From sequence record NC_041973.1: a stretch of 64,000 nt of DNA. One strand, given 5' to 3'. Of this stretch, positions 5,412 to 40,441 are shown piece after piece (the first letter of the stretch is position 1; each line of letters starts with the position of its first letter). The notes beneath the pieces were generated by a model. It ran no database searches and was not told the DNA's origin. It saw only the letters and a list, made by a program, of their open reading frames with translations. A program made the translations under genes and the position numbers.

Positions 5412-5445
5412 CATAACAGGAGAGCTTCGGCTCTCCTTTATGCCG
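5412..5445 (+). terminator. Hairpin + TTATGCCG element
   Basis: aggagagc-ttcg-gctctcct-ttatgccg. Confidence 0.75.
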
Positions 5446-6016: not shown

Positions 6017-6057
6017 CGGCATAAGAGGAGAGGCATTTGCCTCTCCTCTGTTATGCT
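6017..6057. terminator. Bidirectional hairpin with TTATGC on both strands, between convergent genes
   Basis: cggcataa-gaggagaggc-attt-gcctctcctc-tg-ttatgct. Confidence 0.8.
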
Positions 6058-35251: not shown

Positions 35252-35283
35252 GGGAGGGGCGCAGGTCTCTCCCTTTTATGCCG
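35252..35283 (+). terminator. Hairpin + TTATGCCG element
   Basis: gggaggggc-gcag-gtctctccc-ttttatgccg. Confidence 0.7.
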
Positions 35284-35729: not shown

Positions 35730-35774
35730 TGGACAAACACTTACTATTATCTGTTAATTAATCTGGAGTGCCTT

Positions 35775-36221
35775 ATGATTCAACCTATTAACGTTCCCGG
35801 GATGGTGATCAACCCCGAAGTCTCCCGTGAAGTGATCTTAATGACCAGTGAACAGCTGGACCGTTTCTCGATTGCTGCCTTCGACATGCTGGCGTTGGGT
35901 AATACCGTATTCAGTGGTGAGTTCGGCAGTTATGTCACACCATCGCGTGACGAGTTCATGCAGGCTTACCTGCGTCCATTGCAAGCCCCTGACTCGGTAA
36001 GGCGCTACAATGAGATCGATCAAACCCAAGTCGCCTGTCTGGTCGATTCAATTACCCGTAACGAAAAAGGTGATCTGATTGGGCGGGTGATCCCACATGG
36101 TCCGAATGGCCCGAAACTTGAAAAGCTGTTTAAAGAAAAGAAACAGAAGTTCAAAGTCTTTCCACGCCTCAAGTGGGAAAACGGCTGGAAGTTCGTGGCG
36201 TTTGATGTGGGGTATAAGTAA
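35775..36221 (+). CDS. Degenerate prohead-protease-fold protein (T4 gp21 / phiKZ gp175 family), probably inactive
   Basis: GEFGSY, EIDQTQVACLVDSI, GDLIGRVIPHGPNGPKLEKL and AFDV align with T4 gp21 GELNHP, NVDPMQAAIIIED, NDVYGRAR..GPGDKL and VGVDAV. Confidence 0.65.
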   Translation: MIQPINVPGMVINPEVSREVILMTSEQLDRFSIAAFDMLALGNTVFSGEFGSYVTPSRDEFMQAYLRPLQAPDSVRRYNEIDQTQVACLVDSITRNEKGDLIGRVIPHGPNGPKLEKLFKEKKQKFKVFPRLKWENGWKFVAFDVGYK

Positions 36222-36542
36222 ATGGTACGCGCCGATACAACCATCGCAACAAAAGGAAAGGTTGTGCGCTTGAGTGTCACCGGTTACGGGGTGATGAGCA
36301 TGGATGGGGTTATGGTAGATGATCCTAAGCAGCGCGTGAACATGCGCACCGCCCACCCCAGCCAAAGTTGTTACCCACTACCGGGTGAAAAGAAATGGTA
36401 CGAAGTTAAACGGGTAGAGCAGACAGCCAATGGTTGGTGTTATCCGGTGGTCGGGTTATTTAAGTATCCCGGTGATGCCACAAACTTTATTCAATCCCTT
36501 ATTCAGAAATACAAACTCGATCAGGAAAAACCTCATGAGTGA
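36222..36542 (+). CDS. Hypothetical protein (C-domain shared with the next gene)
   Basis: YEVKRVEQ..NG..PVVGLF...DA vs FAVYRREW.NN..VWVGDF...DA. Confidence 0.6.
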   Translation: MVRADTTIATKGKVVRLSVTGYGVMSMDGVMVDDPKQRVNMRTAHPSQSCYPLPGEKKWYEVKRVEQTANGWCYPVVGLFKYPGDATNFIQSLIQKYKLDQEKPHE

Positions 36543-37014
36543 AATTACCGTAAAAGTTGTTGGTCCAATTCAAGCGGGTAAAACTGCAATCGCCTCTTTA
36601 TTGGACAATGCCCTGCGTGCCAATGGTATCATAGCAAAGATCCAGTCCGACTCAGCGCTGTCCTATCTGCGTGAAGCCAAGAACCACGTCCCAACCAATG
36701 TCAGTGTCACGATCATTGACGGTACCGCTGACGGGGTGCGTGAATTTGGTAACAGCGATGATGTCATTCCAATCCGCGGTCGCATCATGGGTATCGAAGT
36801 CCAACCGGTCAAATACACTCCCGCTGAAGCGACAGTGGTTGCGCTGGCCGATGCTAACGCCTTTGCCGTGTATCGCCGTGAATGGCTGAACAATGCGTCG
36901 CTGGCCGTCTGGGTGGGTGACTTCCACGTTGAGAGCGATGCCATTGACTGCGCCAACACCCTGGCTGAGAAATACGGCACCGCCGCTGACTTCCTTTATA
37001 AGGCAGGTTTGTAA
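36535..37014 (+). CDS. Small P-loop-containing hypothetical protein
   Basis: VVGPIQAGKT Walker-A-like motif; start moved to MSEITV behind AGGA. Confidence 0.6.
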   Translation: MSEITVKVVGPIQAGKTAIASLLDNALRANGIIAKIQSDSALSYLREAKNHVPTNVSVTIIDGTADGVREFGNSDDVIPIRGRIMGIEVQPVKYTPAEATVVALADANAFAVYRREWLNNASLAVWVGDFHVESDAIDCANTLAEKYGTAADFLYKAGL

Positions 37015-37016
37015 CC

Positions 37017-37286
37017 ATGCATCAGTTTACTCCTGAGATGAAAGAAACGTTAAACGAACTCGAGCGTGAGTTAGCCCACATTCGTTTAACGCAACCGAAC
37101 CGGATTAACACACTGATCAAAACCAAGTGTTTTAGCCTGGCCCGGAAAACAAAGTCACCGCACGTCAAACGGGTTCTGCAGTCAATTACCGCTACCCCGT
37201 TGTCGGTTGTAAAGTTAGAAGAAGTTCTGAAGCTTTACCATGAAGTGGATAGTGGTGAAGTGGAACTCTCTATTCAGCAGGTTTGA
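37017..37286 (+). CDS. Hypothetical protein
   Basis: 89 aa ORF in operon context. Confidence 0.55.
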   Translation: MHQFTPEMKETLNELERELAHIRLTQPNRINTLIKTKCFSLARKTKSPHVKRVLQSITATPLSVVKLEEVLKLYHEVDSGEVELSIQQV

Positions 37287-37759
37287 GGGGGGTAGAATGG
37301 CGTTGGCTTTCGATTCTTAACGAGTCGGACTTCAACGCAATGACCTTCCTCGCGGTGAAACAATACCACGCTCAGTCTATCTACTGGAAACGACTGGGTG
37401 TGGATTGGAACACCCCTAAGCCTGAGACTGTCCACAAGTTTATGGCCACCTATGTGAAGAATGCCCCGATCAAACTGATGATCCGTAACGCGGATGCGGT
37501 GATGATTGGGTTTGCACTACTCAGTACCGAACGCACGGATAAAGGACTTGTCTGTCACATCGACGAGGTGTTTATCGACGAACCCTATCGTAATAAGGGC
37601 ATTGGTAAGAAAACGCTTATTAGGATTAAACGGCACGCCGAAAAACAGAAGATCGCTGCATTGACCTTGAACGTCAGTGCTGCCAATCCCGTTCGCGCAC
37701 TTTATGAACGTATGGGGTTTGAACCAGTGCAGGTGAAATACCAGATGCGGCTGGGTTGA
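37283..37759 (+). CDS. GNAT family N-acetyltransferase
   Basis: IDEVFIDEPYRNKGIGK acetyl-CoA motif A, LTLNV, N...ALYERMGF motif B. Confidence 0.9.
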   Translation: MRGVEWRWLSILNESDFNAMTFLAVKQYHAQSIYWKRLGVDWNTPKPETVHKFMATYVKNAPIKLMIRNADAVMIGFALLSTERTDKGLVCHIDEVFIDEPYRNKGIGKKTLIRIKRHAEKQKIAALTLNVSAANPVRALYERMGFEPVQVKYQMRLG

Positions 37760-39466: not shown

Positions 39467-39919
39467 ATGTCAGAACAAAAACCCCTTATCCCGTTTCTCC
39501 ACTTCCAGATCGATGCATTCCGTAATTACCTGGTCGCTAATGATCTGACCCCGTACGCCGTCTTTACCTTACCTAAAGGTCTGGACCCGGTACTGGATCG
39601 CTACGCCGATCCTGCCAGTGGTCAGCTGATCCTTAACCTCAGCCCTAACTCCTGTGGTCACTACGAGATCACTGATGATGGTTATATGGTTCTGCATCAG
39701 CGTTTCTCGGGTAAAGCCCACGAAGCGTTCCTGCCGGTCCAACACCTGCTGGCCATGTATGCGCGTGAACGTCAAGACCAGGCCATGGTCTTTGCCGACA
39801 TCGAGCACACCTGCGATGATGATGTGAAATTTGTTGAAGATGAGACTGTACCGGAAGTGGATGACACTAACGTAACAGCCCTGCCCTTCAAGAAACCCAC
39901 ATTAACGGTAGTCAAGTAA
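39467..39919 (+). CDS. sspB: Stringent starvation protein B (ClpXP adaptor) homolog
   Basis: N.LTPY, GQLILNLSP, RFSGK, P...LLAMYARE, acidic linker, C-terminal KPTLTVVK (E. coli RPALRVVK). Confidence 0.92.
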   Translation: MSEQKPLIPFLHFQIDAFRNYLVANDLTPYAVFTLPKGLDPVLDRYADPASGQLILNLSPNSCGHYEITDDGYMVLHQRFSGKAHEAFLPVQHLLAMYARERQDQAMVFADIEHTCDDDVKFVEDETVPEVDDTNVTALPFKKPTLTVVK

Positions 39920-40412: not shown

Positions 40413-40441
40413 GGGTGAGTGAAAACTCACCCTTTATGCCG
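40413..40441 (+). terminator. Hairpin + TTATGCCG element
   Basis: gggtgagt-gaaa-actcaccc-tttatgccg. Confidence 0.75.

Follow-up and report, generated by a model that had tools for sequence, protein, structure and literature searches.

Is the small protein encoded by gp31 of the Erwinia jumbo phage vB_EamM_RAY (Agricanvirus) a relative of the prohead protease and, if so, how much of the active site has it kept? The gene lies in the window analysed here, the first 64 kb of the genome of RAY, a nucleus-forming chimallivirus (Prichard et al. 2023). An initial annotation made from the sequence alone had described it as a catalytically dead copy of the prohead protease; its coordinates match the open reading frame exactly. 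In current databases gp31 (FDH98_gp031) is still a hypothetical protein, and the present analysis gives this gene a fold and a family.

35775..36221, + strand: gp31 coding sequence, 148 aa; open reading frame identical to RAY FDH98_gp031, with an AlphaFold2 model that matches 5JBL (Z 9.4, slightly above the level of unmatched models) and with hhalign matches to the S80 and gp117-like families
35765..35768, + strand: ribosome-binding site GGAG, 6 nt 5′ of the gp31 ATG, read from the sequence

Distribution of gp31 and relatives detected by sequence

Tblastn searches found gp31 at identical coordinates in RAY, with 99-100% identity in 15 further records, and a homologue with 62% identity in phage AH06. 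The gene is entered as 'hypothetical' in some 17 records of Erwinia jumbo phages. A second gp31 paralogue in the RAY genome was found neither by phmmer nor by HMM searches. The protein was absent among those detected by mass spectrometry of RAY lysates and is not one of the 24 whose location Prichard et al. (2023) determined.

Database models of proteases did not recognize the sequence. No Pfam or NCBIfam model matched gp31, and PF20034 and PF03420 matched neither gp31 nor any of the 15 members of its family, even at E 5. A sequence search of the PDB returned only dynein light chain (E about 1), dismissed as spurious. gp31 was assigned to phrog_11015 (E 1e-104) and showed a weak match to phrog_7478, 'head maturation protease' (E 0.04). 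Three of its remote relatives independently matched phrog_7478, again weakly (E 0.002-0.006). The neighbours of gp31 in the ESM Atlas include Peptidase_S77, Peptidase_S80 and DUF2213 clusters.

An exhaustive representative search together with a profile word search gathered 14 relatives with 22-63% identity. Those on long enough contigs derive from phage contigs of about 270-295 kb. In the alignment of all 15 sequences (A3), nine columns are invariant across 22-30% identity. The residues Glu49, Gly51, Gly99, Gly103, Lys117, Arg131, Phe143 and Asp144 are invariant among the 15 members.

The representative search also returned, with E 7.7e-29, a 2614-aa multicystatin and papain-family protein (P0004). 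Its thirteen matches all fall on positions 81-126 of the gp31 profile, where gp31 reads 'TQVAC' and cystatins have the QxVxG hairpin. The low E-value is probably an additive artefact of 13 weak repeated matches, and the candidate was rejected.

Predicted fold of gp31

An AlphaFold2 model of gp31, calculated from the shallow 15-sequence alignment A3, reached a pLDDT of 85.9 and a pTM of 0.79. A Foldseek search of this model against the PDB placed the T4 prohead protease gp21 (5JBL) first (E 0.028, prob 0.94). Independently of Foldseek, VIA-align was run against PDB representatives. Among 48,161 PDB chains 5JBL was again the top match with Z 9.4 (rmsd 3.7 Å, 119 residues, 20% identity), only slightly above the best Z of 7-8 that unmatched models typically reach. 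The second match was the varicella-zoster virus (VZV) protease with Z 7.0, followed by other herpesvirus assemblins.

As a positive control, the genuine S80 protease of RAY was folded and searched in the same way. The same two structures came out on top, 5JBL with Z 14.1 and the VZV protease with Z 4.6. The secondary-structure elements of the gp31 model and the RAY protease model correspond one to one. Both follow the order β, α, α, GE-motif β, α, two long β strands, α, nucleophile strand and Asp strand. In the BFVD, the gp31 model matched annotated prohead core proteases and a large number of uncharacterised 125-160-aa proteins encoded by other chimalliviruses (Phabio, 201phi2-1, Psa21, Miami).

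At the level of the predicted structures, gp31 contains a gp21/assemblin-like core fold. The initial annotation had staked its reading on such a barrel and had proposed a comparison with the S77 and S80 peptidases. In our searches T4 gp21 (S77) and herpesvirus assemblin (S21) ranked first and second among the structures that matched the model, and the profile-profile comparison described below pointed to the S80 family.

Profile alignment with S80 proteases and loss of the catalytic His and Ser

In the RAY genome PF20034 (Peptidase_S80) matches a single place, 138247-138939 (E 1.4e-87). The corresponding genuine protease is a 262-aa open reading frame at genome positions 138229-139017 with the motifs GEMDHP, CFSIR and TWDWV. 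BLASTP revealed no similarity between gp31 and this protease (E 1.2), so gp31 is not a recent copy, and judged from the sequences the relation between the two is ancient. The comparison of profiles was more sensitive. Using hhalign, A3 was matched to an alignment of 24 S80 proteases (A4) with 90% probability and E 1.5e-6.

Residues up to the C-terminus were mapped with a relaxed, low-stringency hhalign comparison of A3 and A4. Gly73-Glu74 of the S80 proteases correspond to Gly48-Glu49 of gp31, and the catalytic His77 to Ser52. The GP.G.KL helix start is aligned with its counterpart in gp31. Further downstream, the catalytic Ser155 falls on Phe129, the invariant Arg157 on Arg131 and the catalytic Asp181 on Asp144. 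The nucleophile part of this alignment is of low confidence and is anchored by the invariant Arg131, which equals Arg157. The corresponding sites in the window are as follows.

35919..35930, + strand: codons of Glu49-Phe50-Gly51-Ser52, the 'GE..HP' motif with His replaced by Ser (hhalign, GEFGSY against GEMDHP)
36159..36167, + strand: codons of Phe129-Pro130-Arg131, the 'S-x-R' motif of the nucleophile strand, in which Phe has taken the place of Ser and Arg is kept (hhalign, KVFPR against CFSIR)
36204..36206, + strand: codon of Asp144, the kept third member of the former triad (FDV against WDW in S80 and VDA in T4 gp21)

The replacements extend over the whole family. None of the 15 members has a conserved His. 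Ser52 is present in 14 of them and replaced by Gln in the remaining one (P0017). The nucleophile position is occupied by F, Y, N, I, H or Q and never by S, T or C. In addition, gp31 ends four residues past Asp144, while the RAY protease runs on for about 80 residues.

The five motifs that the initial annotation had aligned with T4 gp21 are all present and collinear in the gp21 translation: GELNHP (81-86), NVDPMQAAIIIED (90-102), NDVYGRAR..GPGDKL, GVSSR (138-142) and VGVDAV. The central motif block aligns with gp31 as originally written. Between A3 and the T4-like S77 proteases, hhalign aligned positions 80-121 with 90-133 (30%) at a marginal E-value of 5.6e-4. Asp144 is aligned with the Asp of VGVDAV. 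Taken together, the profile alignments with S77 and S80 proteases and the two structure searches indicate a resemblance beyond chance. Apart from this marginal sequence relation, gp31 differs from T4 gp21 in its incomplete triad and its location outside any head-gene cluster.

The resemblance to the chimallivirus protease of MEROPS family S80 (PF20034), represented by phiKZ gp175, SPN3US gp245 and the RAY open reading frame, comprises the core fold, the order of its elements and four aligned features: the GE motif, the start of the GP.G.KL helix, the Arg that follows the position of the nucleophile, and the catalytic Asp. In contrast to these enzymes, gp31 lacks the catalytic His, the Ser, about 80 C-terminal residues, a Pfam match and pairwise similarity. 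The fold, the profile alignments, the missing conserved His and the absence of Ser, Thr or Cys from the nucleophile strand support the view that gp31 is a pseudo-protease, which has the gp21/assemblin fold without the catalytic His and Ser. The claim that these two residues are replaced and that only Asp is left was therefore borne out. Of the description as a catalytically dead copy of the prohead protease, the pseudo-protease stands by fold and profiles; the word 'copy' does not, given the lack of pairwise similarity and the ancient relation.

Could gp31 nevertheless be a protease or hydrolase with another catalytic set, for example Ser52 together with Lys117 or Asp144? Ser52 occurs in nearly all members of the family, and Lys117 and Asp144 are invariant. 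However, Ser52 is replaced by Gln in P0017 and by Glu in the related protein gp206 of 201phi2-1, which makes an alternative triad appear unlikely at the sequence level. With no conserved His and a nucleophile strand that never carries Ser, Thr or Cys, it is highly improbable that gp31 still acts as an enzyme.

gp31 and the truncated protease paralogues of giant phages

A class of proteins resembling the pseudo-protease gp31 is already known. Ali et al. (2017, PMC5694885) described 'diverged, truncated prohead-protease paralogues' in phiKZ-like giant phages, namely SPN3US gp117, 201phi2-1 gp206 (145 aa), PhiPA3 gp143, Stratton gp135 and Kwan gp144. Two copies each were reported from the Erwinia phages Machina, Caitlin and ChrisDB. 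The SPN3US paralogue was termed 'presumably no longer active (i.e., a cryptic protease)'. Agricanviruses are not listed among the carriers in that study, and neither Ali et al. nor the RAY papers mention gp31 as a protease paralogue. The initial annotation made no reference to this published class.

For comparison, we used Machina gp131, Caitlin gp129, Asesino gp132 and the homologues from SPAsTU and PCH45. The paralogues of this set belong to phrog_7478 and the true proteases to phrog_3014. hhalign matched A3 to the gp117-like paralogues (phrog_7478) over 91 columns (96.6%, E 6.4e-10) and to 201phi2-1 gp206 alone with E 2.4e-5. The 'AELGEP' of gp206 matches the 'CELGSP/AELGSP' of gp31 relatives, with Glu at the Ser52 position. 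An HMM built from A3 recognized Machina gp131 (E 1e-4) and gp130 (E 0.007); it found no match in phiKZ, 201phi2-1 and Goslar. In the reverse direction, a gp117-type HMM searched against the RAY open reading frames placed two proteins at the top, the true protease with E 4.8e-6 and gp31 with E 0.009. The same HMM detected two small paralogues in 201phi2-1; in phiKZ and Goslar it recognized nothing besides the true protease. A search for loci related to Machina gp131 returned none.

gp31 and the gp117-type paralogues share several properties. They are small (125-160 aa), their genes lie far from that of the genuine S80 protease in each genome, and they are devoid of the C-terminal part and the catalytic His, with Arg and Asp kept. 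As in genomes with a gp117-type protein, RAY has a short protein (gp31, 148 aa) beside a full-length S80 protease (262 aa, at 138 kb). Three differences set gp31 apart. It falls into a family of its own (phrog_11015), with phrog_7478 matched no better than E 0.04. Its Ser position is occupied by Phe; for gp117, the alignment of Ali et al. has a Ser (S126) there. Finally, unlike the paralogues of Machina, Caitlin and SPAsTU, gp31 is not adjacent to a gene for an HslU-like ATPase.

Judged by profile and motif, gp31 is a more diverged Agricanvirus member of the gp117-type paralogue superfamily. That it represents a truncated non-catalytic paralogue of the chimallivirus prohead protease is very probable. 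The paralogue class as such is already published; its extension to the Agricanvirus lineage, in a form without Ser as well as His, is new, and the function of gp31 is a prediction only.

For gp117 and gp118, Ali et al. considered a split into two genes. By analogy gp32 would be the split-off C-terminal half of the gp31 protein. This candidate was rejected because gp32 is not conserved beside gp31 homologues outside Agricanvirus.

A different combination of residues was observed in Serratia phage PCH45. Its paralogue (L022:2432-2911) carries an insertion with 'SFSIR', the true S80 nucleophile motif, yet has no His motif. The parts of the active site that were lost seem to vary from lineage to lineage.

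Selection and synteny

Comparison of gp31 from RAY and AH06 gave pN 0.225 and a saturated pS of 0.713, corresponding to a dN/dS of about 0.12. The neighbouring transglycosylase gene has a similar ratio. By this measure gp31 is under purifying selection. A 281-kb metagenomic phage harbors homologues of gp25, gp26, gp28, gp29, gp31, gp40 and gp41 in the same order, and no homologues of gp30 and gp32-gp39 were found in that syntenic stretch. In Salmonella phage SA002 the gp31 orthologue occupies about the equal genome position. Purifying selection and kept synteny both argue against a decaying relic.

The name 'cryptic protease' given to the SPN3US paralogue by Ali et al. (2017, PMC5694885) would suit a functionless relic, and MCE-domain barrels, which score Z about 5 against the gp31 model, would suit a generic β-barrel that converged with gp21. 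Both readings conflict with motifs that are invariant over deep divergence. The dN/dS ratio and a syntenic position that gp31 keeps while its neighbours turn over speak against a relic, and convergence does not account for sequence profiles that match protease families specifically and motifs that are collinear. We regard it as very improbable that gp31 is either of the two. Retention of the paralogue under purifying selection in many chimallivirus lineages likewise makes a dead relic unlikely.

Candidate functions of a non-cutting protease paralogue

As a whole, the observations are probably best explained by a truncated non-catalytic paralogue that acts as a non-cutting binding module. gp31 would be a soluble protein with the whole protease core fold kept in the same order of strands and helices. 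Glu49, Arg131 and Asp144, whose counterparts next to the catalytic centre of active proteases do not vary, are retained, and the base and nucleophile are lost together with the C-terminal tail. Such a protein, acting outside the prohead, would bind Glu-containing motifs of the cleavage type, or the protease itself, and leave them uncut. As a consequence, gp31 would limit or redirect proteolysis and not perform it. We infer binding from a preserved groove-forming portion combined with lost chemistry; taken by itself, this mechanism is a tentative suggestion. The Glu, Arg and Asp of gp31 could be purely structural.

Two functions had been suggested in the initial annotation, a dominant-negative timer of head maturation and a decoy for defence systems that sense phage proteins. 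A simple timer has become less plausible, as gp31 has no C-terminal region of the kind that Ali et al. (2017, PMC5694885) infer to target the giant-phage protease into the prohead and to be removed by autocleavage.

The defence idea takes a more concrete form in the light of a recent preprint. Hobbs & Kranzusch (2026, PMC12991175) reported that the activity of T4 gp21 suffices to activate CBASS by cutting an xxE-containing activation loop of the CD-NTase; loops of this type are present in about 24% of CBASS operons according to the same study. In this setting gp31 would be a shield or sponge rather than a decoy. It might shield host sensors of the phage protease (e.g. CBASS CD-NTase loops) or sequester free cytoplasmic protease, and head maturation would not trigger abortive-infection immunity. 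The trigger and the frequency of loop-bearing operons reported in the preprint, the kept non-chemical half of the active site and the position of gp31 within a variable, accessory gene block are consistent with such a role. Stoichiometric shielding of a host sensor is, however, conjecture, and we consider this function for gp31 unlikely. An equally doubtful generalization would be that the pseudo-protease paralogues of nucleus-forming jumbo phages serve as counter-defence against immunity triggered by the prohead protease, by occupying the bait loops of sensors such as CBASS CD-NTases or mopping up escaped protease, in either case with no cleavage. As a conserved non-cutting look-alike of a CBASS-triggering protease, gp31 is a testable candidate for a regulator or counter-defence factor.

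Adjacency of paralogues and HslU-like ATPase genes

In three giant phages a gene for an AAA+ ATPase with an HslU domain lies directly 5′ of the paralogue gene(s): Machina (L017:2329-5238), Caitlin (L018:21-2962) and SPAsTU (L020:417-2839), a relative of SPN3US. In Machina and Caitlin there are two paralogues in tandem, of which one is extended at its C-terminus (phrog_24315). The arrangement suggests a pair of unfoldase and pseudo-protease. RAY has a homologue of this HslU-like ATPase, gp116 (genome 86352-88061), which was localised to the phage nucleus (Prichard et al. 2023). The three open reading frames after gp116 (179, 179 and 139 aa) have no detectable protease likeness.

Outside of head assembly, gp31 might be a partner or adaptor of gp116 that delivers or caps substrates of the unfoldase. 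The position of the phrog_7478 paralogue directly 3′ of the ATPase gene in the three phages, the presence of gp116 in RAY and an SspB-like adaptor, gp39, in the same unit as gp31 would fit this function. On the other hand, gp31 is located 50 kb away from gp116, and the context in 201phi2-1 differs. A partnership with the ATPase seems unlikely. The non-cutting binding module remains the reading that we favour.

Gene neighbourhood of gp31

gp31 is situated in a one-directional block of small genes, variable and accessory in character, 3′ of gp29, a transglycosylase gene with SLT domain matches. The block also encodes an acetyltransferase (gp35) and the SspB-like protein gp39. Between gp29 and gp30 we noted a hairpin element.

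35252..35283, + strand: GC-rich hairpin followed by TTTTATGCCG, between gp29 and gp30; terminator-like site

Judged from its sequence and position, this hairpin is a probable boundary (terminator and/or promoter) of a gp30-gp40 unit that contains gp31. Genome-wide mapping placed the next copy of hairpin and YTTATGCCG on the + strand at 40434. gp39 (39467-39919), a homologue of the ClpXP adaptor SspB, is flanked by the two hairpin+TTATGCCG elements that also enclose gp31, which gives the putative unit another gene linked to proteolysis. The gp39 protein is cytoplasmic (Prichard et al. 2023).

In 201phi2-1 (L028:5214-7468) the small protease paralogues gp206 and gp210 flank an acetyltransferase, gp209. 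RAY gp31 lies four genes before the acetyltransferase gp35, within a stretch that spans 35775-37759, and phmmer detected no similarity between gp35 and gp209. The likeness of the two layouts may be coincidence.

The hairpin element is widespread in RAY, where it may serve as a terminator, a promoter or a processing site. Combined with YTTATGCC(G), the GC-rich hairpin occurs on the + strand of the window at 5438, 16143, 27585, 35276, 40434, 46075, 47094, 49559, 52501, 53076, 61722 and 62947 and on the - strand at 6024 and 11349. The copies are intergenic, and there are more across the genome, in which TTATGCC is present 69 times, roughly 45 of them with a hairpin. Dating of gp31 expression by the hairpin+TTATGCCG element was considered and abandoned, as the same element also precedes the nvRNAP β gene just after chimallin. 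The element contains the TATG of phiKZ late promoters, and one copy lies between the chimallin and nvRNAP β genes.
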